From positions 12,214,001 to 12,278,000 of the forward strand of contig NC_047072.1 of the NCBI RefSeq assembly GCF_902459465.1: DNA of 64,000 bases. The letters are read 5' to 3'. The notes under the pieces were generated by a model that saw only the letters and a list, made by a program, of their open reading frames with translations, was not told the DNA's origin and did not search any database. Position numbers and translations under genes: made by a program. Each line of letters opens with the position of its first letter. Within the stretch, counting starts at the first letter, position 1. Shown here piece after piece: positions 2,786 to 60,113 of this stretch. The DNA comes from Asterias rubens (lineage: Eukaryota).

Positions 2786-3206
2786 ATAGACCTTATCCAT
2801 TGATGTCATTACGCCGCCATCTTTTATGTAAAACAATGATGAATTATTGGATGCGCACATCTTTGTACGTGCGGCGCACAGCATCATTGGCCAATCGGCA
2901 ACCTTCTGGGCCCTATTTCATGGAGCTGCTAAGCGCACAACTTTGCTTAGCATGAAATTTCTGCCTCGAGAAAAACAGGATTACCAACAAAATTTCCACA
3001 TGATTTTCAGGATGAGCAAACATCAGCTGAGTACCAGTAACAAGCAATATGCAACAAATGGAAATTTTGTTGGTAATCCTGTTTTTATCAAGGAAGAAAT
3101 TTCATGCAAAGCAAATTTGGGTGCTTAGCAGCTCTACGAAATTGGGCCCAGGTTACCTGTAGTCGAGGGCGCTCTACTCAAATGACGTCATGTGCATAAG
3201 GTCAAT
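2786..3206. mobile_element. AT-flanked MITE (AGACC/TGACC termini, ISL2EU-like) carrying a nested CWG-flanked MITE
   Basis: AT-AGACCTTATCCATTGATGTCATT ... AATGACGTCATGTGCATAAGGTCA-AT. An uninterrupted homolog lies reversed at 8515-8677. Confidence 0.7.
2906..3151. mobile_element. MITE family D (TIR GGCCCAATTTCATAGAGCTGCTAAGC, CWG flanks, PIF/Harbinger-like)
   Basis: CTG-GGCCCTATTTCATGGAGCTGCTAAGC ... GCTTAGCAGCTCTACGAAATTGGGCC-CAG. The body is largely palindromic, with relatives across the window. Confidence 0.75.
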
Positions 3207-3875
3207 TGTTGAAAACTCAACTTACTTGCCAAATAATATCATTAAAATGTACGATTTCACAACTTATAAATGTGGACAGTAAAATGTTGTTTTCTAAATT
3301 GTTTTTAATCGTCTCTTTAATTTTCTGTGTGAATTTTTTTTCTCTGATCTGAGTAAAATTCGGTTTGCGAATAACATTAAGCCATAAATAATTTTAAAAG
3401 TAAAAAAAAAAACACCACTCAAATGCCGCACAAACAGAGTATACATTTTTTGAAATGATATGCCTACTAACAATCGACAAACTGACCATCTGGCGACGAA
3501 ATGTTGGTGACATTTTGGGTTGTTGGGATGACAAATTATGAGCGGTAATGATCATCAACTGTCAATTGCTATAACTATTGCAACATACCTCATTGTGTTT
3601 AATCAACTACGGTACCTAGCATATTCGCCTATTAAATTTGATTTGCATTTTATGTTTTAAAATTATGAAATATATATACATTGAAGGTCGGCTCAAACAT
3701 TACAACGAATCACAATCAAAATGTCTCGAAAATGTGACATCTCTGGCATTTCTGTAGTGACCCATACTTAAGTACTACGAGAGTACCGTTTTGTCTGTAG
3801 TATAATTCATACGGGCCTCGCAAAAATACTTACAAAAATCTGTACTCAAAGTCATGTACTGATACTCGAATGGAT

Positions 3876-4268
3876 TTAAAGCCAGTGGACACTATTGGTT
3901 ATTGTCAAAGACCAGTCTTCTCACTTGGTGTGTGTATCTCAACATATACATAAAATAACAAACCTGTGGAAATTTGAGCTCAATCGATCGTCGAAGTTGC
4001 GAGCCTATAATATTGAAAAACAAAACGCCCTTGTCACACGAAGTTGTGTGCTTTCAGATGCTTGATTTCGAGACCTCAAATTCTAAACTTGAGGTCTCGA
4101 AATCAAAGTCGTGGAAAATTACTTCTTTCTCGAAAACTACGTCACTTCAGAGGGAGCTGTTTCTCACAATGTTTTATACTATCAACCTCTCCCCATTACT
4201 CGTTACCTAGTAAGGTTTTATGCTAATAATTATTCTGAGTAATTACCAATAGTGTCCACTGCCTTTAA
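3876..4268 (-). mobile_element. MITE family A copy
   Basis: TTAA-AGCCAGTGGACACTATTGG ... CCAATAGTGTCCACTGCCT-TTAA; about 390 bp. Confidence 0.9.
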
Positions 4269-5243
4269 ACTCGCATTCCGATTACACGTATAAGTATGAT
4301 CTTGATAAAAAAAACACCTTCCCTGTACGCTTTCTTAAAATTAATTATAATAATAAATATATATATTTATTATTAACTATTAACCAAGTATACTTGGTTG
4401 TACAACAGCTTTCTAAAGTATACAGCGTTTTTGAGAATCAGTTCTCTTTGAGTAGTGTGGTTAGGGAAAATGTAATAAGGTTTTATACCCAAGGTATGGA
4501 TATTGATATTATGCTCAATGACAATAACATAGGCGTATACGTCATATGGGTATGCAAAGCTTGCAATACGAATTTTTGGGGTGAACACATTTTTTTATCA
4601 CTGGTTTAAACTTTATATAGATACGTGCCCTCTGTGACATATAAAGCAATTTTAATTGATTATCTGTAAAATTGTGCAAGCTATAATACAACAGCAACAA
4701 ATCACAGGCTCTTTATACACCATTCATCAATTTGAAATTCCCGATAAATCCACAAATTGATCTGTACTGAGCTGTGTGGTGTTTGGTGCTTATTTCTGAG
4801 CCGACCGTTCAACTCTAGCAAACTAGCAGTAGGGCCAAGTTTTATAAAGCTGTTGAAACTACACTTGAAAATACCGCGTATAGTAGATTTATTAATATTA
4901 TTAGCTAACGCAAAACAGTGTGTTGGGAACCATTGGCAACAAAGTAAACTCTATGAAACTTTGGCTGGTAACCTGTTTCAGCAAGCAGGATTCTGTTTGT
5001 GCCTGTAGCAGATTTTGTGTGCTCGATTAATTTAGTGAAGTTAAGCCCGTGGCTGTTTGGCTGTGTTTCAATTGGGAACATGTGAATTTTAACATTTGTT
5101 TTACTGAAACATGGCGAACACTGCAAAAACTGGGATGTTAAAATTTACACCACAAGTGTTGTGACACATTATATCTACGGAAGAGACCAACACTTATTTC
5201 TGCAACAAAATCACATTGGTGTTATTTCAACACCCTATTTTAT

Positions 5244-5629
5244 TTAAAGACCCTGGACACTATTGGTAATTGTCAAAGACCAGTCTTCTCGCTTAGTGTA
5301 TATCAACATATATGCACAAAATAACAAACCTGTGAAAATTTGAACTTAACTGGTCGTCGAAGTTGCGAAATAATAATGGAAGAAAAAATACCCTTGTCAC
5401 ACGAAGTTGTGCGCTTTCATGGTTGATTTCGAGACTTAAAGATCTAATTCTGAGGTCTCGAAATCAAATTCGTGGAAAACTACTTCTTTCTTTAAAACTA
5501 CGTTACGTCAGAGGGAGCGGTTTCTCACAATGTTTTATACTATTAAAAGCTTCCCATTGCTTGTTACCAAGTAAGTTTTTATGATAACAATTATTTTTAG
5601 TAATTACCAATATTGTCCACTGCCTTTAA
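5244..5629 (-). mobile_element. MITE family A copy, about 145 bp downstream of the Ig gene 1 stop codon
   Basis: TTAA-flanked TIRs and the family A internal sequence. Confidence 0.88.
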
Positions 5630-5773
5630 ATTCTCTCTTCATTATCTATATAAGTATGTGACATGCGCATGGTGGCATGACACCTCAGTGTTTGCAGTGT
5701 AGCAAACAACGTTTTTTGCAAAAACTTTGTAACTCAGAACTACTGCTTCACCCAGGGTTTTTATGAACTACTA

Positions 5774-7246
5774 CTAGGGCGATGTAATTTCGAGTATCGT
5801 GTTGTCGACTTCAACTACGCAATTACTGAGTTTCGACAAGCTGGTGTTTCTTGAATGGTCCGAAGGGGTCCTTCCCGCGCTTTCTTCGGCATTATTGTTA
5901 CTATTGTCCTGCAAACCACTCTGTATCGGCTGCTCGTACATCTCCAGCTCGGTGTCTTCAAACTGAATCGGGACTAAATTGTTCTCCCTCTTTGATGAAC
6001 GTTTCTTCTCCTTTTGTTCGAGTTTCTTCTCCCGTTTGAGCTGTTTTTGTAGTTGTTTTTCCCGCCGTTTTTGCCGGTAGGAATCGCTGACCAGACAACC
6101 GAGATGCGGTGCGGCGAGGAACAGAATCCCGATTAGAGCGAGGCCACCGAGTGCCGATAGGTCGACGGCGATGAGTAGGAGGGGGTTCCGGGCTAGGGAG
6201 TTATTATCCACGTCGTTGTTATCTTTTACCCGGACGGTAGGGCTTTTTAGTGTTACGGTTATGTTCCTTGAAGCATTTGCATTCCACACTCTGCACGTTA
6301 TTTCGGTCGAGAAGTCTTCGCTTCTTACCTCGGTGATGTTGAGATGTGATGAGAGCAAAATCCTGTTCGAGTCTCGCTCTTCTTCGATGGAGAAGCGAGA
6401 AGTCGTCGAGTTGGTTGAATTAGACATCGGGATGGGGAGGGATGTATTCCCATGAAACCAATGTATTCTTTGTATGGGTGGGTTGGCTGACGCAGAGCAT
6501 GTTAAAGTTATCAACTCACCGAGTTTGGATTTTGGGTGTGATGGCGAAATCATCACCGAGGGTGCGTATAGTACGGTGAGAGGTCCTACTGTGCATGATC
6601 TGTCGTAGCCATCTAGTGCCGGGTGTTCCTCGTGGCATGTGAACACGGCCCCATCATATGCCGGTGTGGCGTCCCATATCACGGTATGGTTAGGCCCAGG
6701 ACCGGCCAGACCCACTTGACCGTTCAAACCCTGCCATGTAAGCTGGGAGTTTGGTCTTCCTCCACTGGCGGTCATACAGGACGCCGAAATCTCATCCCCT
6801 TCAGATAGAGGCGTCCTGTAGCTCGCCGAGCATACGGGGTCTCCAGGAGGTGCCACTGGCGGCAAAATCTTAACCGTCCCTGGCTTTCCGTTGATGGTAT
6901 ACGTCCCATCAGACAACAGACATTCGTATAAACCTTCATCCGTCATCTTCAAGTCATGAATAGTGAGGTTAAAGTATCCACTTGTTAAGTCTTCTTCAAT
7001 TTTAAACTTCGGACGGTTCGTAACGTAGTCGGCAGAATCGAAGCTTAAGATCAGCAATTCGCCAGCTTCAATGTACCAGAAGACTCCGTAGTTTCCTCGG
7101 TCGGTTATTTGGCAAAACAGCCGCACTGTGCTTCCTTCCAACCCACCAGCCTCCGAGAACTGGTCAACAGTTTGAGCAACGGACACCGAGACTGCATGGA
7201 AGGCAACTAACAGGCAGACAACAACGATTGAGAAATCTGCCGCCAT
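5774..7246 (-). CDS. Ig-superfamily type I membrane protein 1 (signal peptide, V + C2-like + I/C2-like domains, TM, tail; nectin/CADM-like architecture), 490 aa, single coding exon
   Basis: AAAATGG start and hydrophobic leader. V-domain C...W...DEGLYEC; domain 2 CMTASGGRPNSQLTW...CHEEHPAL; domain 3 CSASANPP...W...C. TM LLLIAVDLSALGGLALIGILFLAA is followed by a basic tail. Confidence 0.92.
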   Translation of the reverse strand: MAADFSIVVVCLLVAFHAVSVSVAQTVDQFSEAGGLEGSTVRLFCQITDRGNYGVFWYIEAGELLILSFDSADYVTNRPKFKIEEDLTSGYFNLTIHDLKMTDEGLYECLLSDGTYTINGKPGTVKILPPVAPPGDPVCSASYRTPLSEGDEISASCMTASGGRPNSQLTWQGLNGQVGLAGPGPNHTVIWDATPAYDGAVFTCHEEHPALDGYDRSCTVGPLTVLYAPSVMISPSHPKSKLGELITLTCSASANPPIQRIHWFHGNTSLPIPMSNSTNSTTSRFSIEEERDSNRILLSSHLNITEVRSEDFSTEITCRVWNANASRNITVTLKSPTVRVKDNNDVDNNSLARNPLLLIAVDLSALGGLALIGILFLAAPHLGCLVSDSYRQKRREKQLQKQLKREKKLEQKEKKRSSKRENNLVPIQFEDTELEMYEQPIQSGLQDNSNNNAEESAGRTPSDHSRNTSLSKLSNCVVEVDNTILEITSP

Positions 7247-7874
7247 TTTGAAAAAACTTTGTTCTGATGCAACTGTTCAGTTTAGTTGTACTCAGTCTGC
7301 GTTATTAAAATAATTTTGTTCCAAGTATTTAGGTTAAAGTGTATGTAGTAAACTGGGTAGCAAGCGTGTATCACGTATGTAGGCAGACATTAGTGATCCC
7401 TTTTTGCACATCAAAGAGACACTTTTGTTCGAACAACCTTGACACTCGAACTCCATTTTTTGTTCGATTCAAGTAGTATAGACTCCACCCAGCGTACAGT
7501 ATAACAACAGCCCCGCGTCACAAAATCAACACTGCCCAAACTCGCACAGAAAGTGTTTTTGTTTTCAGTGCAAATAAGAGAAGAGAAAGAAACGGAAATT
7601 GTTTGAATAGTTTCACTTTATAAAAAGACAAAGGTTTTTAACAATGACGACGCTACAGGGAGGCAGGGCACATGCCCACGCCCAATGTGCTACACCTTGA
7701 AATATGGACCTTTGAGATTAAAAAAAATGAATAAAAGCTTTTATGAAGTAATACTTTTAAATGTTTAAAATGTTGGTTCGATTAAAATTGTGCATCCCCT
7801 TGTTCCCCTAAAAATAATTGATTTGTAGTCTAATGTTCCAGCCATGTAAACGACTGATACACATTACATGCGCA

Positions 7875-8242
7875 TTAAAGATGCTATGTCAAATTTTTGG
7901 CCGATTTGACCAAAAAATTTTCATTTAAAATTCAATAGGTATTTTGATGGGGGTCGAGAAAGTAACAAGCTTTCATTTGAGCCATTGCTCGAAAAAGTCC
8001 GCCAATTATTAGTAGCAGTGAAATAAAGTGCTCAAAATTAGTTTTTGTCGGGATCCCGACAATATATCACGTGACCAATTCTTATGAGAAACGTTTTAAA
8101 TTTGTGTCATGGTTCCTGACCATTAAAAGTAAAAGTTAAACTTTGTTTCGTTAGAGCGGGTGATACTCTTTGAAATACCATTCACTCAAAAAAACAATAT
8201 TTTTTAATATTTGGGGCAAAGAATCTGACATAACATCTTTAA
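7875..8242. mobile_element. Distinct TTAA-flanked MITE family (TIR AGATGYTATGTCA; Kolobok-like)
   Basis: TTAA-AGATGCTATGTCAAATT ... GAATCTGACATAACATCT-TTAA. Confidence 0.75.
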
Positions 8243-8440
8243 CAATTAATTGTATTGCACCCTGGCTCCACAGTGCCATACTTGGACCGTATACCGAATA
8301 GCGGCTACGAGCCACAGCTACGACTGTTGCTAAGGGTGTGACCAAAGACGTTACGTCATTGCATAATGAAGTGGCGATCAAGCTGTAGCCTGCGGACACG
8401 GCTTTATATGATTGCCAGAGGCAAATTGATGACGCCATGT

Positions 8441-8677
8441 ATTGACCCCTTGCACGCGCGTCACACGCGACGACTGGGCCCAATTTCATAGAGCTGCTAA
8501 GCAAAAGGCACCACCACATGACGTCATTTCAGTAGGGCGCCCTCACCTAGAGGTCAAAAGGAGGTTGTTCATTGGCCAATCCTGTGCGCCGCGCGTACAA
8601 ATCTGTGCTTTTCGATTGTTTCGTCACCGTTTTTCCACTAGGATGGCCGCTGGATGACGTCAATGCATAAGGTCTAT
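8441..8677. mobile_element. Chimeric AT-flanked MITE remnant with two TGACGTCA (CRE-like) motifs and a CCAAT box
   Basis: 8515-8677 is the reverse-complement homolog of 2786-3206. The left part matches the element start at 52070 and a family D TIR. Confidence 0.6.
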
Positions 8678-9662
8678 TGCTGTTACCAAGCATCCAAGTA
8701 CATGTAAGGTTTTATGTAGCCTTTAATCAAGGCGCATGCAGCAGCGGCACCCCCCCCCCCCAGATATCAAGCACCAACCGTTCATTCAGGTAAACCATGC
8801 GTGTAATCGCGCGATATCTCGGACACACGGGATTTTGTACCCTTTTACATCATTATTTTGTTTTCAACAACGCTAATAATATTACACCCGTGGTGTAATT
8901 GTTTTCACACAACACCCATGTTTTTGCCAATTAATCCAACCTATGTATTTGAAGTTACATGGGTGTTTGGTTTGGGCTCAACGGGCGTACCTGTTTGGGA
9001 CTAGACGCGTATAAGATTTGCTTCTTAGTGAGCTCCCCTGTAGTTCATCAAAGTGTATTTACTTCCGCTTGGCTTATCTTAGTCACGAGAGAATAGTGAA
9101 CAACCGATTACAAAGTTTGCAGTGCTTAATTTCAAGGGATGTTTTCAACTGTCGTCATCATTAGATCGTGTAAGCTTTATGTAAATCTGTGATCTTCACG
9201 ATTTTTGTTTCTTACAAGTTATGTAATGTTCCTTTAACTGTATTATTTGGAACATGTGCATATTTTGCCTGTATTGCATTCGTTACTGTGGAAACAATAA
9301 ACATTGAAACCTTGAATATCCATCACAATCCCGGGCTGTAAGCCAATCCTGATATTTTTCTCTGGCTCAGGAGAACAAAATGTGTTTCGGGTTTCAAAAC
9401 ACGTACACCGTGCCAATAAAGACCAGTTTTCAAATTGTTTGAGTTTTCTTTTTAAGAGGATTGCTATGCCCAAGGGGATGCACTATTCTTTCAAATGAAT
9501 AGTCTGGACTTCCCCCTATGCAAACCTCCCTATCCAAACCTCAGACCTGCTTTTCACACAGCAGAATCAACAACCAAACAAACAGTCTGTGCCCCCAAAA
9601 CAGGGTTTTTTAAAACTCTACTCATAGTTCTATCTATATAGCTAAACGGGGACACATTATTC

Positions 9663-10045
9663 TTAAAAGCCTAGGACACTATTGGTAATTACTTAAAATA
9701 TTTATTATCATAAAACGTTACATTGTAATGAGTAATGGGGAGATGTTGACAGTATAAAACATTGTGAGAAACGGCTCCCTCTGAAGTAACCTAGTTTTCG
9801 AGTAGAAAGAAGTAATTTTCTACGAATTTAATTTCGAGACCTCAGATTTAGAGTTTGAGGTCGCGAAATCAATCATCTGAAGCCACACAATTTCGTGCGA
9901 CAAGGGTGTTTTTTCTTTCATTATTATCTCGCAACTCTGACGACCAATTGAACTCAAATTTTCACAAGTTTGTTATTTATGCATATGTTGAGATACACCA
10001 AATGAGAAGACTAGTCTTTGACAATTACCAAAAGTGTTTGACACA
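9663..10045 (+). mobile_element. MITE family A copy with degenerate right end
   Basis: TTAA-AAGCCTAGGACACTATTGGTAATT start and family A body. A partial duplicate of the right end follows to about 10140. Confidence 0.8.
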
Positions 10046-10146
10046 TTTTTTACCGAATTTTTAGTTTATGCGTATGGTTGGATACACCAAGTGAGGATAC
10101 TGTTCTTTGACAATACCAAAAGGTGCCAAAACACTTCCTAACACGG

Positions 10147-10319
10147 CTGCCGTCGATTTCACAAAACTCTTCCTAACTTAAGACTAATCTTAGGACTTAG
10201 GACGAGTCCCAACACTGCAATGTAGCATGCAGACCTTAAGATTAATCCTAAGTTAGGACGAGTTACTCGTCCTAACTCGAGATAAGACGAGTCCTAACTC
10301 TTTGTGAAATCAACCCCAG
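10147..10319. mobile_element. Small CWG-flanked MITE with CCTAAC/GGACGAG modules (Harbinger-like)
   Basis: CTG-CCGTCGATTTCACAAA ... TTTGTGAAATCAACCC-CAG. Second diverged copy at about 60324-60476. Confidence 0.65.
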
Positions 10320-10809
10320 TGCCTTTAAGCGGGTCTATGAAATTTGGGCCAGCTTTCACTGCAGTCAACAAACCCAAAAGCCCAGTCTGTGCCAAAAACG
10401 GTATATTATTAATCAGTCTATTCAACTGTTTTGAACAGAAAGTCTCAAAAGTGTTACCCTTGACCTCTCATAATGCGCGTTTGAGTTTGGCAGTACCAAA
10501 CAATACCAGTGCCTTAGTCACACCTTTTGATTCAGATGACTGATTTTAGTAAAAAGGGTGTTCGATATGACTGTACGACTGGGAATTACACTGCTACAAC
10601 TCGCCTACTAAACAGACATACCACACTCACTTAATGTTTTGAAGGGAACCTTGTGTATTGGGCGTGTTTTTTTTAGAACTTATTGGAACTTATCGTGAAC
10701 TTGTTTGATTTTATTGGTGTCAGAGAACCCGTCAAGTTCATCAGTATTACAGAGCGTGAAGAGCACTGTGGGAGTAGGACATTTTGCAGTCGTGAGTTTT
10801 GAAACCAAC

Positions 10810-29435: not shown

Positions 29436-31585
29436 GTTTTGACTAACGCGTCTGAGCTCAGTGGCAAATTATTGAAGGCCTACACTCACGTTAGTATTAT
29501 TATTATTTATTTATTCAGCCCAGACTTCAACAAACAGTACAAGATACAATATTACCGCAAAATATAACAATATAAATGAAATATCCTCGGGAAAACATCT
29601 AGTTATCCACATGGCATGGCAACAAGTCTCACAAGCAAGTAGTTTCGCAACCAAAGTCATTCACGAATGAAGCTACTCACATGGCAAGAATTCAGGATTC
29701 TTTTCTAAACTAAAAGAACGACAACTATGAATTCCTCATACTATTGTTGTTTTGGCAAATTGACCCATCAGAAATGTCCAGTAAAAAGAACTATTCAAGA
29801 GTGAGGATTCTAAGAACATTTTAGAAAAGTCAAAAGCAGGGAAGTTAGTTGGTCAAGAATGGATTGTAAACGATGGTGGAAACCAGACAGATAGGGCTGC
29901 AGAAACACTCACACCCCAAGTGGTGTACCGGGGAAGGAGGAAGCCCTCCCCCGCCCCCTCCCATCCTTGCCCTCTTTCTATTAAAACACGTTCCCGTCGC
30001 TTAAGCTTGCTAGACCTTGCAACAAGTCGTAATGGTGTTTTATTCATGCTCATTGGCCTACTTCTGGGATATCCCACCATGAAGATGCATTATATTTGTT
30101 GTTTATAATATTTGTTATCTTGTCTATGTTTCATTCGTTGTACATAAAACCATTAAAACACAACTCAGCTTTTGGCTGCGATTTTTGAATGTTTGTGATC
30201 AACCAGTAACCAATTTATGGTAATTTGTTTTGAATGAAATCAGAACATCGAACAATGATTGGTCTGAACATGGTGGGGAAAATTAGAAGGAGTTACGTTG
30301 CCACCCCCCCCCCCCCCCAAATGTCTGGTTTTCCAGCGCCCTGCGTTACAAAACATCGTGGTGTCAAAAAATAAATGAATGGGAAATGAGAAATGAATCA
30401 CACCAGGAAAACAACACTGATTTATTATTTCGGGTACATGTACTTATAGTTGTGACTCTAATAACGGTAACCTTTCCCAATGCAAATATAATTTGACGCA
30501 GGTAAACATTTCGAGCACGACCAACACAAACACCTTTCTCTTATGAGAGGTCTATTCATAGCGACTGGTGGCTATTGATGTATTGATGACCACTTTTGTC
30601 CAGCCGTTCGGTTGATGTCACGAGCAGTGAAAAGATGGCGATATTGTACACATTTGCATGAGAAAAGACTAGCAGAGGTTCGAGCGAGAGATACACAAAC
30701 TGTTGCTTTATAAACACAATCTAATTTAAGGGTTTGGAGGGCGTTGTCTGTTTAAACATGGAGGAATAATAAAGTTGATCTCATTTTGAGAAATATTAAA
30801 TGCATGGGGTCATACAACATAAAGGGTGTCTTGTTTTGGGATGTGAATTTCTAGGAGTCGGTGGGAAAAACGGCAATTTTAGGGAATTCACCTTTTTCCC
30901 CCAAAATGGAGGTGGGTGTGTTGAAAGTGGTGCACTGCTAACAATAGAACGAGTGTGCTTTAGAGTTTGTATTCACATGCAGAGTGGGGGAGGAGGTGAC
31001 GGGGAGGTCGTCTATAATCCCCGGATGTATCATTTGAATGCATTGTCAATTGTGATTAGTCATTGCTTCAACGGAATTCCATTAACGTTTGCTTGGTTTG
31101 GCATTACAATGGATTCACAGCAGAATACTAGTGTAGAGTGTTAATATAGTACAGCTACACTGTGGTGTGAGTAATTTTATAAGAGAGCATCTATTCTGTA
31201 AAAAAAACCTGTATAGAGTTACTCGAGGAACATGGACGAAGAATCTGGAAGCAGAAACGATTTGTGATTGTGAAGGGGGAACCGACCAGCCCTGTAATGT
31301 GGTGGACCTAACTCTGTTGCTGGAACTCCTTCAACTGTCTCTCTGCAGCAACCACATGTATCGTAAGTTGAAGGACATCGTGTGTATACTGATAGGCCTA
31401 TAACGTGGTTACAAGTGACACTTGTGACCGTATGTACAATTTCGCTTAAGATAATATTGTGATAGTGAAACTGAATTTGCTGCATGGTCGGAGTCCGATA
31501 GCTCGGGTGATATTATGCTTGGGCCTGCCTCCATCATGGTGATAGAATTATGATACACTGTGAGGAGATTTCGACTAAAAAAAAA

Positions 31586-33343
31586 ATGGCTCCACGACTA
31601 AAGCTAACTGTGTTACTTCTACCATGGTTCGTTGTGATTATGTTAGTGTGTCGCACTCATCAACAGCAGGTTACGTTTGTAATTCAACCACAAGATATGA
31701 ACATTATCGAAGGATCCAAAGCCGTTTTCACGTGTGAGATAACCACCAATGAAGTAGAAGAAATAAAGTGGTACCGCTGGGACACAGCAACAGGGGGAGG
31801 CTCATCACAAGTAAAGGATGTCGGTCGTTTTGAAATATCTGAAACAACGGGGACAACAGCTCAAAGCCTGATTATCAGCGAAAGCATACTGAGCGATTCG
31901 GCGTATTACTTCTGCACCTACGGGAACCAGTCAAAGTCCACGCTGGGTAGATTGGAGGTCCTCCCAAAAACTTGGTTGCCGCAGTGTTCTCGGACACCAA
32001 GCACTGGGAAACTTCCCATCGGGGAACGTTTTGAGCTTGCATGTACCTCAACCGGCCATGTGGACACATCTCTCGTGTGGTACGTACGAGAGACCTCAGG
32101 CAGATCCGCTGTTGACAACGTCCAGGTAATTAAGGATCAGGAGTTAATGAATGTTACCTCAATCTACGGTAGCATGATAGGTACATCCGATGCTTTAGTG
32201 TATACTTGTGAGGCTTCTTTGGATGGTCTGTTCCAACAGGAGAGCTGTACCGTATCAATTAACGATGAGGCTCCGCTTGATATTATCCCTTATATTGTGG
32301 TGGGTCTGATGAGTCTCATTGCCTTACTGCTGTTCTTCGTGGTGCTGTGGATCCTGTTCAGACACAGACAGTGTCGCATCTGCCAACAGGCTATGCAAGA
32401 ACCTCACACGGTTCTGGACGCAGCATCTTTACAGACTGGTTCCTGGGTTCCTCCACCGGTAGTTGCCATTGACGTTGAAGGCAGTGAGGGCAGTGAGAGC
32501 AGTGAAGATCGTGTCTCGGAGAAAGATACCCAAATACACCATTTAGATAGAGGTACCAACCAACCTCCTGACGTGGTGCCTGTTTTGGAACCCGTTGAGG
32601 TACCCGAGATAGGTGATCAGCCTAGCAGTTCCTCTGAAGTGGTTCCTGAAACGGAACCTGCAGATTCATCGGAACCTGTTCCGAAAGCAGAACCAGGACC
32701 CACAACCGAACTCAAACCGAAAACCAAGAACCTCACCCTGACCAAAAACATAGACAAGAACATCGAGAAGCCTGAGAAAATTGTCGAGAAGAAGGAGATT
32801 CAATTTCCAGCACACAAGACACGCGGAACGCGCAGACCTAGGGACAAGAAGGTCAAACATTACAAGGAACCTCCAGTGAAGGCGAAAATGAAAGAAAAGG
32901 AACCGATCTACGCCCATGTTAAAAAGCTGAACGTGCCAACAAAGTCCACTCAGGGGGGTTCAACATCAGCAGATGCCGTACCGTCTACCTCAGCGGGGGC
33001 GACGGCAGTCCCCCCACCCGATCCACCACCCCGACCTTCCCCTGACTCGGAGTCGAAAGACACAAGCTCCACGACCACGAACTCGTCAGACCAGACCCCG
33101 GGCGTAAACGATCTAGGACGGGGGAACTCCAAGAAGAAACGAGTCAAACACTACCGAAAGAAGTCCGAGGACGTCAAACGGAACTCACATCCTGAAGAAA
33201 CTGTGTTGAATATACCGGCGGCGACCAACTCGACCTCTGAATCGCCATCAGCCCAGCCGAAGAGCTCACCCAAAGTGCCCGCAGACCGAGTCATCTATGC
33301 AGAGTTAGATTTCAGTAAAGATGTTGGACCCAATATTATATGA
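31586..33343 (+). CDS. Ig-superfamily type I membrane protein 4 (two Ig domains, TM, long Pro/Lys-rich tail with EPIYA and ITIM), 585 aa, single coding exon
   Basis: AAAATGG start and signal peptide (an upstream in-frame ATG at 31550 is possible). DSAYYFC domain 1; CTSTGHVDTSLVW...YTC domain 2; TM IIPYIVVGLMSLIALLLFFVVLWILF; tail ends VIYAELDF... Confidence 0.92.
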   Translation: MAPRLKLTVLLLPWFVVIMLVCRTHQQQVTFVIQPQDMNIIEGSKAVFTCEITTNEVEEIKWYRWDTATGGGSSQVKDVGRFEISETTGTTAQSLIISESILSDSAYYFCTYGNQSKSTLGRLEVLPKTWLPQCSRTPSTGKLPIGERFELACTSTGHVDTSLVWYVRETSGRSAVDNVQVIKDQELMNVTSIYGSMIGTSDALVYTCEASLDGLFQQESCTVSINDEAPLDIIPYIVVGLMSLIALLLFFVVLWILFRHRQCRICQQAMQEPHTVLDAASLQTGSWVPPPVVAIDVEGSEGSESSEDRVSEKDTQIHHLDRGTNQPPDVVPVLEPVEVPEIGDQPSSSSEVVPETEPADSSEPVPKAEPGPTTELKPKTKNLTLTKNIDKNIEKPEKIVEKKEIQFPAHKTRGTRRPRDKKVKHYKEPPVKAKMKEKEPIYAHVKKLNVPTKSTQGGSTSADAVPSTSAGATAVPPPDPPPRPSPDSESKDTSSTTTNSSDQTPGVNDLGRGNSKKKRVKHYRKKSEDVKRNSHPEETVLNIPAATNSTSESPSAQPKSSPKVPADRVIYAELDFSKDVGPNII

Positions 33344-33460
33344 ACTATTTTTTTTAGTTGAAGTTTTTGTATATACTCAATATACTTATATCAACAAATG
33401 TATGCAGGGACAAAATTTACCCAGGAAGTATTTTTTTAAATGTACATGTAGCAGCATGAC

Positions 33461-33658
33461 CAGGGCCCAACTTCAAGCCTGTAAGCAAAAAAAACCTGCT
33501 AAGCTTAGGAAAATCTTGCTTAGCACAAACAGGTTACCATCCAACATTCCATAAAGTTTACATTGTTGCGACTGGTGTCCCGACTCATTTTGTGCTTAGA
33601 AGAAAAATATGTCAAGTAGTATTTTCAGTGCTAAACAGCTTTATGAAATTGGGCCCCG
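33461..33658. mobile_element. MITE family D copy, about 120 bp after the Ig gene 4 stop
   Basis: CAG-GGCCCAACTTC ... GAAATTGGGCC. Confidence 0.65.
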
Positions 33659-33736
33659 AATGAGGAAGTTTCAATAGGATACCTTTGACTAACTCCTTTC
33701 AATCAACATCCTCTAGTTTTTTTATAAAGCATCCTG

Positions 33737-33930
33737 CACTCTAAAAACATCGGGGTCAGATTTGACCCAGATTTCGGGCCCCGTGTGGCCCTGACACATT
33801 TCTTAGTCAGTGTGACCCAGATTCTGAGTCAAAGTGACCCAAAAATGGGTCAAAAGGACACAGAATCCGAGTTAGAAATCCCATTTGTAACCACTTCCTA
33901 GGTCAACCTGACCCAGAAATGATTCAGACC
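33737..33930. mobile_element. EnSpm/CACTA-like fragment with repeated TGACCC motifs
   Basis: CACTCTAAAAA terminus followed by many TGACCC/GGGTCA motifs. Similar pieces near 22640-22830 and 23330-23440. Confidence 0.4.
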
Positions 33931-33952
33931 CACAACGACAAAAAATAATGTC

Positions 33953-34170
33953 TTAAAGGATTTGGGTACTTTTTGTTACACAAAACATTAAACATTTATG
34001 TATATTAAACTAATACCGTTTGAAGATAATGATGGTAGAAAGTTGACCTTAAAATACTACTTGCCAGGCTGCTGTAGTTTTTGAGAAATGAGTAAAACAA
34101 TGTCACGAAAACACATTTTACATGCTAAAATTATTTCCGTGGCTTGTTTTACTAATTTCTCAAAAAATAG
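33953..34170. mobile_element. MITE family C left-arm fragment
   Basis: TTAA-AGGATTTGGGTACTTTTTG; homologous to 2309-2480. Confidence 0.7.
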
Positions 34171-34353
34171 ACTTTAAATTAAAAGGAAATGTTTGCACAA
34201 TTTTATCGTCAGGTTTGAGGATTGTTATTGGTTTTCACATTCAAAAGGACTCTATAAGTAAATGAGTGGATCACAAAACTTTATATTGATGTAAAGGGGC
34301 TCACTATATGGTGACTTTCTTATTACGTTTTTGCATTGTTGTGAGACCAACCT

Positions 34354-34521
34354 ATAGACATTAATTTTATCACGGTTCAGCCATCTTGAACTTCTCCCAT
34401 TGATGTCAATGGAAGAAAAAATAGTCTGGTTCCTATATTTTCAAAATGATTATTATCATTCATTATTGTTAGTCGACACGAGGAACATAACCAAGATGGA
34501 GGCAGCATGAAAAAGGTCTAT
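34354..34521. mobile_element. AT-flanked MITE (same family as 12770)
   Basis: AT-AGAC ... AAAGGTCT-AT; shared AATAGTCTGGT and CATTCATTA core. Confidence 0.6.
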
Positions 34522-34602
34522 TCGAAGCTTATTGTTGTTTTGTATATTTTATCATAAAGTATATCAAGATGTTATTCAATGACATACATGTATAGTTACA
34601 AG

Positions 34603-34785
34603 CAGGGCCCAATTTCACAGAGCTACTTAAGCAAACAATGTTGCTTTATAATTGTGTGCTTAGCAGAAATGAGCAGGATACCAGTCACAATGTGTACACG
34701 AGACATGGTAATGTGGCTGGTAACCATAGTTTTGTTGTGCTTAGCTTCTTCTTGTGCTAAAGCAGCTCTATGAAATTGGGCCATT
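34603..34785. mobile_element. MITE family D copy
   Basis: CAG-GGCCCAATTTCACAGAGCT ... AGCTCTATGAAATTGGGCC. Confidence 0.7.
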
Positions 34786-34811
34786 GTTACTAGAGAGAGG
34801 TTACACCACCT

Positions 34812-34987
34812 CAGGCCTGTATGCTTCGTTTTTGAAAAGACAAGGGCACCAAGGCATTTTCTCTTTGGCAAAGGGCACCCTATGAGAAAACTGTAAATTT
34901 CTACTGGAGAATTTCAAGGGCACCAAGGCAACGACCAGGAGACATGGAGGCAATCGCCTTCGTTGCCTCCGTGAAGTATCAGGCCTG
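34812..34987. mobile_element. Small CAGGCCTG-terminated element with a 6-bp flanking direct repeat (hAT-like)
   Basis: CCACCT-CAGGCCTGTATGCTTCG ... CGTGAAGTATCAGGCCTG-CCACCT; internal AAGGGCACCAAGGCA repeats. Confidence 0.6.
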
Positions 34988-34994
34988 CCACCTA

Positions 34995-36028
34995 AATTCT
35001 CCAAAAATCAATTACCATAAAAACTGACTTGGCAAAAAGCATTGGAGAGCCATTCCTATTACAACACATTGTTAAAGCAACGACACCCTCTGAAGTTGTG
35101 ATGTAGTTTTTAGAGGGGTAATTCCCCCTCCCCCCCAAAAAATAAAAAAATAAATAAATAAATAATAATGATAATAATTTAAATCTGAAGAAGGCTTCAG
35201 CCATGAAGCCTTCCTCAGTTATCTGAAAACACACAATTCTATGCAATGAGGGTGGTATCTCTTTCTTTACTTTTGCAACTTCGGTATTACCGTTTGAGCC
35301 CAACCGCTCACAGGTTGGTTATTTGTTATGTTGGACACACCAACTGATTAGGGTACTGGTCTTTGACAGAATACCAAAAGTGTCCTGCCTTTAAATTGAA
35401 GAAGTTGTTTTTATTTAAAATACTGTGTAATGACTTAAAGGCACTGGACACTCAAAAAGAATTAGTATACAAACTTTTTAATGTTTGCGATAGAGGTAAT
35501 TTCTCACTCAAATAACAAAAGACTTCAGCTGAAGACTGTTATTATGCATGTACGCAAAACGATGCAACAAGGTTGTTTTTTCTTTCATTATTCTCTTGCA
35601 AATTCGATGACCAATTGAGCCCAAATTTGGAAAAACACTAAGTAGAATACTGGTCCTTGACAATAACAAAACGTGCCCAGTGCCTTTAATGACGTACGCA
35701 ATCTTGGACGAAATGTGATATGATGCTTATGAACAAGCTGCATTAAAGGCAGTGGACACTATTGGTAATCACTCAAAATAATTATTAGCATAAAACCTTT
35801 CTTGATTACAAGTAATGGGGAGAGGTTGATAGTATACAACATTGAGAGAAACAGCTCCCTCTGAAGTGACGTAGTTTTCGAGAAAGAAGTAATTTCCACG
35901 AATTTGATTTCAAAACCTCAGATTTAGAGTTTGAGGTCTCAAAATCAAGCATCTGAAAGATACTGTTGAGATACACAAAGTGAGAAGACTGGTCTTTGAC
36001 AATTACCAATAGTGTCCATTGTCTTTTA
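34995..36028 (+). mobile_element. Three adjacent degenerate family A MITEs (about 34995-35394, 35435-35689, 35743-36028)
   Basis: TTAA-AGGCA(C/G)TGGACAC and GCCT-TTAA ends with family A internal blocks. Confidence 0.7.
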
Positions 36029-57306: not shown

Positions 57307-58946
57307 AATAAGGTGTTGTACTGTGTTGAAAATATTTCTACAATATTTGCATTTAATTATACAGGCCCTGGCATGAACCTTTCAAACCGCAGAGGGAGAA
57401 CAATCTGCTAACCAGAGGAAAAGTCTGAACACAAGGGCAAAGAACTTCGTGTGTCCATGAATGAAGTCAATGGCACCAAGGCAAAAACACTGTGTGTAAT
57501 TTTTATTCGTTGTGCACCATTGACAAGAGTGATTGATATCATTGTGTGTGCTTAGCGAGTTCCGCACGTACTGAGAGAGCTATTGATGAACTACCCCATG
57601 TTAAGTCAATGGTTATCTACTGCTGATAGCAACATCAATTCGTGTTTCGCGCTCGAAGTGCTCTCGCCTATAAAGTGCTCATATTGTCTTTAATCCCCGC
57701 GAAGTGGTAAAGTGCTTCAATATTGTCTTTGCGATCAACACGTTGAGTATTAGGAGGGAAATGATAAAACAAAGAGTGCCACAATTAACTAATTTTCAAA
57801 GGAGTTTGATTTGAGAAAAGCTAAACATTGACACATTCGGTGTGAAGGGTCTGGATGACACAAACACTGCGTCTGCAGCAGAGCTACAAAGAAGATATAG
57901 ACACGTAGGGGGTTAGTGTGTGTGTGGGTAGGTATCCACATTTAAACCAGTATACAGTGCTTACACACATCGGTGTATATGGGTAAAAACCAAAATTAAT
58001 ATTCTTTATCCCCGATGCAAATTTAACATCTATTACACATTTAAACCGGGAACCTATAACAAAAGGGACAATAGGTCCACGGTTGCTGTCACAAAGAAAA
58101 GCATTGTGGTCCACGGTTGCTATCACAAAGAGTTGAACAAAGGAGGGTGCACGATTGCAGGTGTTTACACACTCTTGTGTGCGGATGACAAATTAAACCA
58201 ATCAGAATTGACAACTATTTGAAGCACAATGAAGTTATAGCTTGGTTTTCATAGAGCTCAAATTAACTCTGACTTCAAAAGGTACAAGACACTCTACTTG
58301 ATGCTGGCTTCAGTATAACAATTAACAGTGTGGCAAAGCTGTCAGTTTTTTTTTTTTATCTGTGGATCGCCATTCGCAAAGGCAGTGGACCTAATTGGTA
58401 AATTAATAAGAAGGTCGCTACATGCAGAGAGGCAGTCGAAGGTACGAGTTGTAAATCTGAAAGGAGACTATTTCTGGAGACAATGGCTGACAAGGGCTCG
58501 TATATTTGATTTATTTATCAAAGGTTCAAACAATACTTGATTTATTTAGGTTGTATTCATAATATATAGCGGACGGAAATTATCACTTATTGTGTTGAAC
58601 ACTGCTCATGTTAATTTTATAAAGTTGCTTCCCGCTGTATGGCTTTCTCTTGTATATTTACACCGTTAGTATCCGTCAAATTCTCCGAAGAGCTAGCTAT
58701 TAATTTGATAAACTTACTTCAAACAAAAACCTGAAGAGGGGTTTGGGGGCTTTGTCTCACGAGGCAACTTTTAATGGGAACTTGGCGGCAACCAACTGCA
58801 GTGCATGCTACCGAAGTACTTTGATAAGCCCATGAGTAATTTGTTTAAAAATTGTATTAAACATTATTTGAACATTCAAATGTGAATGCCCTTTCTTGTT
58901 GAAGATTGCCTGAAACTGGTTGCCAGTAATCTGCTCCGTTGGCCCT

Positions 58947-60113
58947 ATGATGGAACCGCCAGTCAACTGCAGCTACCCTCACTTCACCGACCGTGTAATT
59001 CGTCCTGTAGGGGCGGAGTCCCTCCACCTCACCCTTGCGGCGATCGGGATCCTCGGCAACGGCCTCGTCTTTATTCTCTTCCTACGCCTGCCCATATTGC
59101 GAGTGAACACCACAAATATCTTCCTCTTCAACTTGGCAATCGCGGACTTCTGCAGCTCGGTGTTCCTGGCGATCCGGCCGTACGCATTCGCTCTCAATCC
59201 GGAGAATATAGTCTGGAACGAGTTAGTGTGTCGCTTCTTCAAGTCAGATTTCCCTCTCTGGACTTGCGTAACTGCCTCCATATACAACCTCCTCCTTGTG
59301 ACGTTCGACCGGTACCTGTGCGTCGTCAAGCCGTTTATATACCGTCGATACTTCACTGTGCCGAGGATCCGACTAATGGTCGCACTCTGTTGGATCTTTT
59401 CCGCCATTTTGGAGACATTTTGTTTCTACAGCACTCGCGTGAACGCCTGCGGCCGTTGTGAGATTTACTGGTCTTCCGTCACATTACAGATTGTCTGTGC
59501 TTTCGGTGTGTTCTTCACCACCTATCTATTCCCGACAGTCGTCATGCTCTTCGTGTACGGGAGAATTGTAAAGACCCTAAAGGAGCGAGAGGAGGCTCTG
59601 AAGAACCATCAACAGAGGGCAGCAGCCGCTAGCCTACTCCGTACCCGTCGTAACATCGTCACCATGCTTCAGCTTCTAGTCCTCATGTTCGGTCTCCTCT
59701 GGGCTCCAAACCAGATCCTCTTTCTGGTCATCAGCTTTCCAGGCGTCACCGCTGACATCGAAAGCATTGGTTACACCATCCTCGTTGCAGTGGGATTCCT
59801 GAACTGTGTTGTAAACCCCTTCGTTTACGCCTTTAAAAACCCCAAGTTCAGGAAGGGGTTCATCACCGTTATCTGCTGCCGTCGTGGACACTCTATTTCC
59901 CCGTCTGATTTCAACGGCAGCGGCGGTGATGACTCTCTTACAGTGAACTCCAACAAAGTTACCGTCTCTGTAGTCAAACAAAGTGCTATCGTTGCGTCCC
60001 AGAAAGAATTTGCAGGGCAGTTGAACCACGTTCGTTTCGAAGACCAGATGGAAATACAGGGACGGCCCCCATCAGTTAAAACTGATAGAGCGTCTGACAT
60101 TCTAGAAGAGTAG
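58947..60113 (+). CDS. Intronless rhodopsin-family (class A) GPCR, peptide-receptor-like (galanin/allatostatin/somatostatin type) or orphan chemoreceptor, about 388 aa
   Basis: In-frame TGA at 58911, then ATGATGG. Seven hydrophobic segments with GN (TM1), LAIAD (TM2), C and FDRY (TM3), W (TM4), FP (TM5), LWAP (TM6), NPFVY (TM7) and CC in helix 8. Confidence 0.92.
   Translation: MMEPPVNCSYPHFTDRVIRPVGAESLHLTLAAIGILGNGLVFILFLRLPILRVNTTNIFLFNLAIADFCSSVFLAIRPYAFALNPENIVWNELVCRFFKSDFPLWTCVTASIYNLLLVTFDRYLCVVKPFIYRRYFTVPRIRLMVALCWIFSAILETFCFYSTRVNACGRCEIYWSSVTLQIVCAFGVFFTTYLFPTVVMLFVYGRIVKTLKEREEALKNHQQRAAAASLLRTRRNIVTMLQLLVLMFGLLWAPNQILFLVISFPGVTADIESIGYTILVAVGFLNCVVNPFVYAFKNPKFRKGFITVICCRRGHSISPSDFNGSGGDDSLTVNSNKVTVSVVKQSAIVASQKEFAGQLNHVRFEDQMEIQGRPPSVKTDRASDILEE

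Follow-up and report, generated by a model that had tools for sequence, protein, structure and literature searches.

In vertebrates, ITIM receptors act as central brakes on, and modulators of, immunity and adhesion. Because the tails evolve fast, the early history of these receptors is difficult to follow. SHP-type phosphatases usually require two phosphotyrosines for full activation, and the vertebrate ITIM adhesion receptors SHPS-1, PZR and PECAM-1 often use SHP2 positively. PD-1, SIRP-alpha/SHPS-1, PZR/MPZL1, PECAM-1 and LAIR-1 are type I proteins with an Ig ectodomain and a disordered tail carrying [SILV]xYxx[ILV], and LAIR-1 is reported to associate with Shp1, Shp2 and Csk (PMC11421324). 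The adaptors PAG/Cbp, LAT, NTAL and SCIMP are built from a transmembrane helix, a CxxC and a long tail of tyrosine motifs without an enzymatic domain. In PAG, LAT and NTAL the juxtamembrane CxxC is a palmitoylation site, and PAG also has a proline-rich SH3 ligand (PMC3342071). EPIYA-class motifs occur in CagA (EPIYA-A/B), other bacterial effectors, Pragmin and p140Cap. Csk and SHP2 both bind to the EPIYA segments in CagA, Csk binds to that of Pragmin, and the extended form EPxYAxV is reported to be depleted in mammalian proteomes (PMC3593179). Binding of Csk and SHP2 is known for the motif class (PMC3593179, PMC4946704, PMC3561454), and in p140Cap the EPLYA is named as key to the binding of Csk (PMC3561454).

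The window analysed here is a stretch of 64,000 nucleotides from the sea star Asterias rubens, whose genome measures 417.6 Mb. It holds a gene, Ig gene 4, that shares the type I layout, Ig ectodomain, disordered tail and [SILV]xYxx[ILV] of the vertebrate ITIM receptors. The ITIM of PD-1, VDYGELDF, and VIYAELDF here have V.Y.ELDF in common (PMC7078208). However, the sea-star protein has a single ITIM, at the extreme C-terminus and inside a 20-residue conserved module, and differs further in its very long tail (328 residues), CxxC box and polybasic stretch. It shares the order of transmembrane helix, CxxC and tyrosine-motif tail with the adaptors. Two further features recall PAG, a pY-[A/S]-x-V site that is a candidate for Csk binding and an SH3 ligand rich in proline (PMC3342071). 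The adaptors differ in having an ectodomain of a few residues rather than two Ig domains (about 205 residues) and have no sequence homology to Ig gene 4, in which palmitoylation is putative. An exact EPIYA lies in the disordered region, as EPIYA[H/Q]V followed by basic residues; this matches the bacterial EPxYAxV consensus and resembles the CagA example cited in the first-pass annotation, whereas EPIYAES of Pragmin does not fit. Unlike the EPIYA proteins, the carrier here is a host transmembrane receptor and not a cytosolic or injected protein, and it has one motif copy without repeats, similarity confined to the motif and binding that is predicted only.

Gene structure and receptor architecture

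The coding exon specifies the following features (window positions).

31586..33343, + strand: complete single-exon CDS of the Ig receptor (Ig gene 4), an ORF of 585 codons plus stop
31586..31666, + strand: signal peptide, about residues 1-27, a hydrophobic N-terminus with an AF2 helix at 3-23 and then a low-confidence linker
31673..31960, + strand: Ig domain 1 (I/V-set; Pfam I-set 7.8e-15, V-set 9.5e-8)
31979..32260, + strand: Ig domain 2 (C2-like; Pfam Ig_2 1.8e-12)
32282..32356, + strand: transmembrane helix, residues 233-257 (AF2 helix 233-267)
32357..32386, + strand: juxtamembrane box FRHRQCRICQ with CxxC (C263, C266), from the family alignment
32387..33340, + strand: intrinsically disordered cytoplasmic tail (AF2 pLDDT 32-48, dN/dS 0.20)

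The start codon is likely the ATG at 31586, in agreement with database protein P0001 (585 aa, 100% identical), and the stop codon occupies 33341-33343. A signal peptide, two Ig domains and one transmembrane helix give a type I topology, and the Ig receptor gene of the first-pass annotation is borne out by the ORF, Pfam and AF2 as a genuine type I Ig-superfamily receptor. The AF2 model of the two-Ig ectodomain reaches a pLDDT of 85.7; the cytoplasmic tail, about 320-328 residues long, is modelled without secondary structure beyond about residue 270 (pLDDT <50). The coding exon is also single in the orthologs from A. amurensis, Patiria, Amphiura, Anneissia and Saccoglossus, and in Patiria the neighbours around the ortholog are conserved as well. 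The transmembrane-plus-tail region has only one copy in its own genome. We regard the gene as almost certainly functional.

The best fold matches of the ectodomain were D1-D2 of CADM2/3/4 (TM 0.54-0.61, fold level only), with Kirrel/Rst, IgSF11 and SIRP-alpha next (Kirrel2 0.57-0.58; Rst D1-D2 0.53). PDB sequence and fold searches returned generic Ig matches and no named vertebrate receptor family for the ectodomain; the family member from Apostichopus has been automatically named 'kin of IRRE-like'. The D1-D2 fold is common to the CADM/nectin-like and Kirrel/Roughest proteins and to the receptor described here, but CADM/nectin have three Ig domains and Kirrel five, against two in the sea star. 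Moreover, CADM carries 4.1/FERM-binding and PDZ-binding tail motifs, both lacking in Ig gene 4, and the extreme C-terminus varies within the family (PNII, NILE, PDV, EEYS), with no PDZ ligand conserved there.

The transmembrane stretch from VVGLMS to FFVVL shows no differences among four sea-star sequences. Directly after the helix comes C263-R-I-C266, and R261, C263 and C266 are invariant in 10/10 family members. By analogy with PAG, LAT and NTAL we infer that this box may be palmitoylated, and the cytoplasmic half as a whole appears to resemble PAG/Cbp-type adaptors. SCIMP was the nearest language-model neighbour of the transmembrane-plus-tail region (0.79), a value at noise level that serves as a lead only. 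The very short, ligand-incapable ectodomain that defines such adaptors is absent from Ig gene 4.

The tail is under purifying selection, tighter than that on the Ig domains. Against the sea-star ortholog L004 its dN/dS is 0.20 (0.13-0.29), and tail values of 0.20-0.21 compare with 0.36-0.45 for the ectodomain (Fisher p 0.003-0.005). Against A. amurensis, whose ortholog is 84% identical at a dS of about 0.08, the ectodomain gave a dN/dS of 1.14 (Ig1 1.53). However, the bootstrap interval of 0.64-2.25 and the value of 0.36 against the more distant L004 leave positive or diversifying selection unsupported; what they show is an ectodomain that outpaces the tail in evolutionary rate by 2.5-5 times.

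Evidence for transcription is weak. Reads from four runs were inspected. In the runs presumed to be RNA, coverage is continuous over 31155-33570, with no splice joints, and absent over 30368-31103, a pattern for which low-coverage DNA is an equally likely source. A true seawater metatranscriptome (X6) contributed two small contigs only (32446-32596 and 32638-32843), and a search confined to RNA-Seq libraries picked out a single marine metatranscriptome, at a share of 0.07.

Tail motifs and their conservation

Five conserved blocks lie within the tail.

32855..32869, + strand: KHYKE block (Y426), same letters in four sea-star orthologs and none in other classes
32897..32938, + strand: KEPIYAHVKKLNVP, EPIYA / EPxYAxV site (Y442), with the blocks KEPIYA and VKKLNVP the same in Patiria
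33017..33040, + strand: PDPPPRPS, class II PxxPxR SH3-ligand consensus, in four sea stars, with PPRPS as an identical block
33107..33172, + strand: NDLGRGNSKKKRVKHYRKKSED, NDLG box and polybasic stretch with Y523, from the family alignment
33278..33340, + strand: C-terminal ITIM module PADRVIYAELDFSKDVGPNII (Y571), with a 14-residue block the same in Patiria

The motifs reported in the first-pass annotation could all be located, and all four share one intact ORF. EPIYAHVKK is encoded exactly at 32900-32926 (gaa ccg atc tac gcc cat gtt aaa aag) and VIYAEL exactly at 33290-33307 (gtc atc tat gca gag tta), with 11 residues between its Leu and the stop. PDPPPR lies at 33017-33034, and the pair KVKHYK/RVKHYR at about 32849-32866 and about 33140-33157. 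EPIYA (residues 439-443) and VIYAEL (residues 569-574) both fall in the disordered region (pLDDT <50).

In shuffles of the tail, the probability of at least one ITIM was 0.16, rising to 0.20 for at least one ITIM or ITSM, and about 0.23 copies of PxxPxR are expected by chance. EPIYA arose in 22/200,000 shuffles (about 1e-4). Chance could therefore yield an ITIM or an SH3 ligand, and EPIYA alone is improbable in itself; it is their conservation in relatives that lifts the motifs above chance. The shuffle likelihood of 0.16-0.20 nevertheless places VIYAEL below the cut-off of 0.25 used for human ITIM receptors, and with its position in an unstructured region it qualifies under that scheme (PMC11460946).

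The sea-star comparison comprised four sequences, namely the window protein, A. amurensis, L004 and Patiria, the last being 45% identical overall and 54% in the tail. The first-pass annotation had staked its reading on motif conservation in orthologs, and the four tail tyrosines are invariant in the three other sea stars. Tyrosine is scarce in the tail (4/328 residues), and blocks of at least five residues identical to Patiria, which make up 23% of the tail, hold all four (0.23^4, about 0.003). The block KEPIYA.VKKLNVP stands at the 95th percentile of tail conservation between Asterias and Patiria; Patiria has EPIYAQV where the window, A. amurensis and L004 have EPIYAHV, and PxxPxR is retained in 4/4. 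Two more word-index searches, with the transmembrane-plus-tail alignment and with the Patiria protein, gave the same four sequences, so the age of EPIYA rests on these four.

A profile of the transmembrane-plus-tail region, searched against 1.84 billion proteins, matched significantly in echinoderms of four classes and in Saccoglossus, as well as two sequences without a label and a marginal one that looks spurious (P0012). The same search found no homology to a vertebrate ITIM receptor, PAG, Pragmin or CagA. Across the family the tail retains the C-terminal module D.V[IV]YA.L[DN]F...G.NI, which crinoids, brittle stars and sea stars all have and which Saccoglossus encodes in a shifted frame. 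It is kept in 8/10 aligned members, Saccoglossus being the ninth, with VIYAELDFS in the +1 frame as VIYAELDFSRNVGMNIM immediately before a stop. The Saccoglossus stretch concerned (L017:7330-7470) contains A-rich runs, and the shift ahead of the ITIM may be an error of the assembly. By position, V569, Y571, L574, F576 and G581 are conserved in 8/10, A572, N583 and I584 in 9/10, and D567 in 10/10. The octapeptide VIYAELDF is the same in sea stars, brittle stars and the acorn worm, the crinoids having VVYADLNF; in the Apostichopus member the ITIM tyrosine is lost to His. The module is very likely a functional linear motif. Within the NDLG box, N508 and L510 are found in 9/10 members and G511 in 8/10, and a basic stretch with a tyrosine recurs in brittle stars (SVYKKK, SLYKKN) and a sea cucumber (RLYRKSK).

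EPIYA[H/Q]V, KHYKE and PxxPxR, on the other hand, are restricted to sea stars in the family alignment, and the brittle star retains the flank ..LKQLNI.. at the EPIYA site without the Tyr. The combination of EPIYA, ITIM and SH3 ligand highlighted in the first-pass annotation is thus present in full, but the ITIM alone is ancient and family-wide, and the combination is a lineage-specific elaboration because its other elements occur in sea stars only. By the same token, EPIYA is dispensable for the core function of the family. The KHYK/KHYR sequences, with His at -1 and basic flanks, are poor Src-type sites and may instead belong to a polybasic membrane-binding unit or a repeat unit. Residues 405-470 and 502-561 of the window protein align as an internal repeat (Smith-Waterman 62, z 5.3); the same repeat was not significant in the Patiria protein (z 1.5), and a real repeat in the tail is a possibility.

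Candidate readers and alternative explanations

Around Y442 and Y571 alike, position -3/-4 is acidic, -1 is Ile, +1 is Ala and +3 is V/L, a context that fits the rules for Src-family substrates and SH2 ligands. The proposed readers are encoded in the same genome. An SHP2 gene with two SH2 domains and a PTP lies at C19:5152365-5164569 (N-SH2 exon against human PTPN11 2e-42, the N-SH2 being split over two exons), and a Csk gene at C11:12340091 (SH2 exon against human CSK 6e-31, kinase exon 10 kb downstream). Transcripts of Csk and Src-family kinases have been reported from Patiria eggs (PMC11593052).

We propose that engagement by a ligand, or homophilic engagement, would cluster the receptor, possibly within palmitoylation-dependent membrane domains. 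Src-family kinases would then phosphorylate Y571 of the VIYAELDF module, as well as Y442 of EPIYA[H/Q]V in the sea stars. The SH2 domains of the SHP2 ortholog would dock on pY571, and PxxPxR would be open to an SH3 domain. At pY442 a further SH2 domain would bind, for which Csk is the best candidate. Together these steps would regulate Src-family and tyrosine-phosphorylation signalling locally, much as with SHPS-1, PZR, PECAM-1, LAIR-1 and PAG/Cbp. Judged from motif context, SH2 signalling enzymes are probably drawn to the tail, SHP2 for example and perhaps also Csk. That the Y571 module serves as a phosphotyrosine/SH2 site is likely, and the balance tips slightly towards SHP2 as its reader, although the presence of just one canonical ITIM in the tail counts against the proposal. 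Y442 is probably phosphorylated, and Csk can be named as its reader only tentatively. The inhibitory receptor wired to Csk and SHP that the first-pass annotation envisaged is likewise what we infer from the motifs, with the Csk assignment as its weakest link.

This weak link is where the strongest alternative applies, namely that the ITIM is a genuine SHP-type SH2 site and Y442 is either unphosphorylated or bound by a reader such as the SHP2 C-SH2, Crk, PI3K p85 or a PTB protein, so that the Csk-plus-SHP wiring is wrong. The sea-star restriction of EPIYA beside a family-wide ITIM would suit this, as would the brittle star, which keeps the flank without a Tyr and hence suggests that the block was functional before the Tyr arose. 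Bacterial EPxYAxV peptides, moreover, bind many SH2 proteins promiscuously (PMC3593179), so the reader of Y442 is not deducible from sequence. Against it, few parts of the tail are as well conserved between Asterias and Patiria as KEPIYA.VKKLNVP, and Y442 fits both the Src-substrate rules and the pY-A-x-V preference of the Csk SH2 in an animal that has a Csk gene. On this evidence we consider the alternative rather unlikely.

A second possibility concerns both tyrosines. YAHV and YAEL each match the YxxPhi sorting consensus, and their main task might be to bind AP-2/AP-1 mu and so govern how an adhesion molecule is endocytosed or delivered in a polarised way, a role in keeping with an ectodomain fold nearest to the adhesion molecules CADM and Kirrel. 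Dual-use tyrosine motifs exist, CTLA-4 being an example. However, conservation around Y571 spans -4 to +13 and includes the V at -2 and the F at +5, which matter for SHP-type SH2 domains and not for mu2. Ile at -1 and Ala at +1 are furthermore optimal for Src-family kinases, and the few tyrosines of the tail are all conserved, which makes a mainly sorting role quite improbable. The weakest alternative, a nonfunctional ORF or motifs that are neutral by-products of slow divergence, draws on the thin RNA evidence and the retrocopy-like lack of a coding intron but can hardly be right given an intact ORF, the same single-exon structure amid conserved neighbours in Patiria, single exons in brittle star, crinoid and acorn worm too, a tail dN/dS of 0.2 and a VIYAELDF unchanged from sea stars to Saccoglossus.

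Meaning for the family

Taken together, Ig gene 4 probably represents a type I receptor of an undescribed, Ambulacraria-restricted family whose disordered tail is a candidate phosphotyrosine scaffold. A bolder reading, which we hold to be unlikely, is that EPIYA[H/Q]V would be an endogenous 'master-key' phosphotyrosine site, kept presumably since the Forcipulatida-Valvatida split beside an ITIM fixed since the ambulacrarian ancestor. If it were true, the family would combine an Ig receptor with a PAG/Cbp-like palmitoylated Csk/SHP scaffold in one hybrid of ancient origin. It would then count among the oldest ITIM receptors that can be traced and would provide EPIYA signalling with a natural template on the host side. 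Should the motifs be sorting signals, or Csk not the reader, the gene would be another uncharacterised invertebrate Ig receptor. The sea-star EPIYA[H/Q]V makes this protein a rare host transmembrane carrier of the bacterial-effector form of the motif and could show its native role. For non-chordate deuterostomes, the family as a whole documents an ancient ITIM-type motif with unusual clarity, and the candidate readers SHP2 and Csk are present.

Architecture of gene 4 and its neighbourhood

The first-pass annotation placed an EPIYA motif, a C-terminal ITIM, an SH3 ligand and a twice-used basic tyrosine motif in the tail of Ig gene 4, and all four were borne out when read from the window sequence. 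They are held by a single long ORF (31550-33343):

32900-32926 (+), EPIYAHVKK, the EPIYA motif
33017-33034 (+), PDPPPR, the SH3 ligand (PxxPxR)
33290-33307 (+), VIYAEL, the ITIM, with 11 residues between its Leu and the stop (33341-33343)
gene 4 tail (+), the KVKHYK/RVKHYR pair

Translation likely starts with the ATG at 31586, since this is where the orthologs and the 100% identical database protein of gene 4 (P0001, 585 aa) start; residue numbers refer to this 585-aa protein. Pfam assigns its Ig domains to I-set (7.8e-15) and Ig_2 (1.8e-12), and AlphaFold, given a 10-sequence family alignment, models the ectodomain as a confident two-Ig fold (pLDDT 85.7). In the full-length AlphaFold model a transmembrane (TM) helix spans residues 233-267, and the tail after it (pLDDT 32-48) is without secondary structure as far as the C-terminus. 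The nearest fold to the ectodomain is D1-D2 of CADM2/3/4 (TM-score 0.54-0.61), followed by Kirrel2/Roughest and then IgSF11 and SIRP-alpha; a PDB sequence search with the ectodomain returned generic Ig matches only.

Tyrosine occurs only four times in the tail: Y426 (KHYKE), Y442 (EPIYA), Y523 (RVKHYR) and Y571 (ITIM). When the tail's two KHY-bearing segments, residues 405-470 and 502-561 (window 32798-33268), are aligned, the Smith-Waterman score is 62 (z 5.3, equalled in 0/500 shuffles), and both segments end in LN[VI]P. The pattern suggests an old internal duplication, with the EPIYA tyrosine in one copy only; self-alignment of the corresponding segments in Patiria miniata was not significant.

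The window contains five single-exon Ig-superfamily membrane genes, clustered at 5774-45152, and a single-exon rhodopsin-family GPCR (58920-60113 (+), 7tm_1 9e-40) 14 kb downstream of the cluster. Of the five Ig genes, only gene 4 has an ITIM and a 328-residue tail together with two Ig domains. Genes 2 and 3 (10705-12255 (+) and 19564-21072 (+)) are three-Ig paralogs, 47% identical, whose tails both carry ..RYQNVN.AF.., a pYxN site of the Grb2-SH2 type; the gene 3 copy fits TxYxxV (ITSM-like) as well. Immediately downstream of gene 4, read depth at 33496-35151 is in the thousands in every run, with many joints and loose ends, which indicates high-copy repeats or transposon fragments. Evidence for expression of gene 4 is weak. 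Small pieces of it (32446-32843) were found in seawater and marine metatranscriptomes from five studies, and one run, X6, has two gene 4 contigs with 0-1 mismatches; these may come from planktonic larvae or gametes, DNA carry-over being an alternative.

Conservation and constraint of the tail among sea stars

Word-index searches found three relatives, giving a comparison of four sequences: the window gene, Asterias amurensis (84% identity), a fragment in the sea-star assembly GCA_014845345.1 (L004) and Patiria miniata (45%). Motif loss in orthologs had been named among the things that would refute the initial reading. Instead, EPIYA, the ITIM and PxxPxR are kept in all three relatives, as are both KHY sites, the first being VIKHYK in Patiria and so failing the strict regular expression. 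All four tyrosines are invariant across the four sequences. Tail identity with Patiria is 54%, and identical blocks of at least 5 residues make up 23% of the tail (SLQTG, PPPVVAID, PPDVVP, KHYKE, KEPIYA, VKKLNVP, PPRPS, NDLGRGNSKKKR, HYRKKSED and PADRVIYAELDFSK). Every one of the four tyrosines falls within such a block (chance ~0.003), and 11-residue windows centred on them rank at the 84th, 95th, 95th and 100th percentiles of tail conservation.

The orthologs in A. amurensis and Patiria are single-exon. In Patiria the same Ig genes (504 and 556 aa) flank the ortholog, so that the order 502/504-aa gene, gene 4, 558/556-aa gene is kept (L002, the Patiria locus, 2972-16957). In L004:1-1055 the ortholog frame is open from nt 585 only, with the signal peptide and first Ig1 strands out of frame upstream; possible causes on this 3-kb contig are an intron, an insertion and an assembly error.

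When the tail was shuffled, one or more ITIMs turned up in 16% of trials, or one or more of either ITIM or ITSM in 20%, below the 0.25 cut-off of a published human ITIM-receptor pipeline (PMC11460946). The chance expectation for PxxPxR is 0.23 copies, and EPIYA appeared in 22/200,000 shuffles. The ITIM and the SH3 ligand could thus each arise by chance, and the case for them is conservation, not bare occurrence.

Nei-Gojobori dN/dS of the tail and ectodomain among sea stars
Gene 4 vs L004 (dS ~0.45-0.63): tail 0.20 (bootstrap 0.13-0.29); ectodomain 0.36 (Fisher p 0.005 vs tail)
A. amurensis vs L004: tail 0.21; ectodomain 0.45 (pattern repeated)
Gene 4 vs A. amurensis (dS ~0.08): tail 0.65 (dN 0.026, few changes); ectodomain 1.14 (dN 0.141, interval 0.64-2.25, not significantly >1)

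Constraint is tighter on the disordered tail than on the folded domains, a strong argument that the tail contains functional linear motifs. Against A. amurensis, dS is threefold lower in the tail (32357-33340, 0.040) than in the ectodomain (31667-32281, 0.123; Fisher p 0.009); the gap is not significant in the comparison with the more distant L004. Mutational heterogeneity, gene conversion or RNA-level constraint might account for it.

The wider family and the age of the ITIM

A TM+tail profile searched against 1.84 billion representative proteins gave ten matches, two of them without a label. Outside sea stars the family occurs in the crinoids Antedon mediterranea and Anneissia japonica, the brittle star Amphiura filiformis, the sea cucumber Apostichopus japonicus and the hemichordate Saccoglossus kowalevskii; a further protein, P0012, was a marginal and apparently spurious match. 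In the A. rubens genome (G000; 417.6 Mb, 150 contigs; window at C12:12214001-12278000) the same profile matched the gene 4 locus only. Gene 4 belongs to an undescribed family, whose members in Amphiura, Anneissia and Saccoglossus likewise have a single coding exon.

Family signatures are L.VLP.SW.P.C linking the two Ig domains, IPYIVVGLLS...LF in the TM, the juxtamembrane box FRHRQCR.C (R261, C263 and C266 in 10/10 aligned members) and, in the tail, P.P..VLD, PPDV[VI]P, N.TL..N[IM][DE] and an NDLG box with a basic stretch after it. At the C-terminus, the module D.V[IV]YA.L[DN]F...G.NI is widely retained (D567 in 10/10; A572, N583 and I584 in 9/10; V569, Y571, L574, F576 and G581 in 8/10). In Apostichopus (P0010) His replaces the ITIM Tyr and the module is shortened (..SDHASADGLSLNI..), an apparent but not confirmed loss in the sea-cucumber lineage; the cluster also includes P0015, an equally long protein from another source. 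The annotated Saccoglossus ortholog ends early, in a Gly/Lys-rich stretch (...GGDR, stop). However, the +1 frame of its locus (L017, GCA_000003605.2, ~7330-7530) reads a Lys-rich stretch, then DDPVIYAELDFSRNVGMNIM, then a stop, so the module is present here too. The frame changes within or directly after A-rich homopolymer runs, and the annotated end probably stems from an assembly or model that is shifted by one base and hides a conserved ITIM. Asterias, Patiria, Amphiura, Saccoglossus and P0006 (an unlabelled database protein) share the octapeptide VIYAELDF without change, and on this identity the motif dates to the ambulacrarian ancestor, >500 million years ago.

Across the aligned family, only sea stars have the EPIYA tyrosine; Amphiura retains the flank without the Tyr (..SLKQLNIDT vs ..HVKKLNVPT in sea stars). 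KHYKE and PxxPxR are similarly confined, except that Saccoglossus has a proline-rich block. Brittle stars and the sea cucumber also have a Tyr within a basic stretch, as around Y523. DEPIYYISKP in Saccoglossus lies at another position, after the proline-rich block, and is taken to be an independent occurrence. With the ITIM family-wide and EPIYA, KHYKE and PxxPxR sea-star-specific, the combination first noticed is an old ITIM plus a sea-star elaboration.

Candidate readers and proposed signalling

In six-frame Pfam searches of G000, PTP exons at C19:5163284-5164569 have two SH2 domains (C19:5152365-5154075) upstream of them on the same strand. For the N-SH2 exon the match to human PTPN11 (2e-42) is better than that to PTPN6 (1.6e-30); by sequence this gene is unmistakably SHP2. 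For another SH2 exon, at C11:12340091-12340309, human CSK (6e-31) is a better match than CHK/MATK (2e-22), with a tyrosine-kinase exon 10 kb downstream. Contig C11 carries two Csk-like genes of SH2 and kinase exons (12340091-12350353 and 2224932-2231976), the first having human CSK as its best match. Transcripts of Csk and of Src-family kinases have been reported from Patiria eggs (PMC11593052).

Y442 has E at -3, I at -1, A at +1 and V at +3, and Y571 has D at -4, I at -1, A at +1 and L at +3; Y426 and Y523 have His at -1 and basic flanks. The first two contexts meet the established Src-family substrate preferences and the latter two do not; Y442 and Y571 would be the candidate Src-family substrates. 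VIYAELDF, hydrophobic at -2, +3 and +5, would suit SHP-type SH2 preferences, and V.Y.ELDF is common to it and the PD-1 ITIM (PMC7078208). The sea-star EPIYA[H/Q]V matches the bacterial EPxYAxV form, reported to be depleted in mammalian proteomes (PMC3593179), whereas Pragmin (EPIYAES) does not. Csk is a known binding partner of the EPIYA segments in CagA and Pragmin (PMC3593179; PMC4946704), and EPLYA of p140Cap is reported to be key to Csk binding (PMC3561454). LAIR-1, an ITIM receptor associating with Shp1, Shp2 and Csk, is a precedent (PMC11421324). The gene 4 protein resembles PAG/Cbp in its invariant CxxC immediately behind the TM, its long tail of tyrosine motifs and its proline-rich ligand (PMC3342071).

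The first-pass annotation had proposed an inhibitory receptor wired to both Csk and SHP phosphatases. From this proposal a functional C-terminal ITIM-type motif emerges strongly supported and EPIYA, as a putative phosphosite, moderately so, whereas Csk as the EPIYA reader and an inhibitory output are weakly supported. The motif contexts and the likenesses to PD-1, bacterial EPIYA, LAIR-1 and PAG/Cbp suggest that the gene 4 protein would join an Ig receptor to a phosphotyrosine scaffold of the PAG type.
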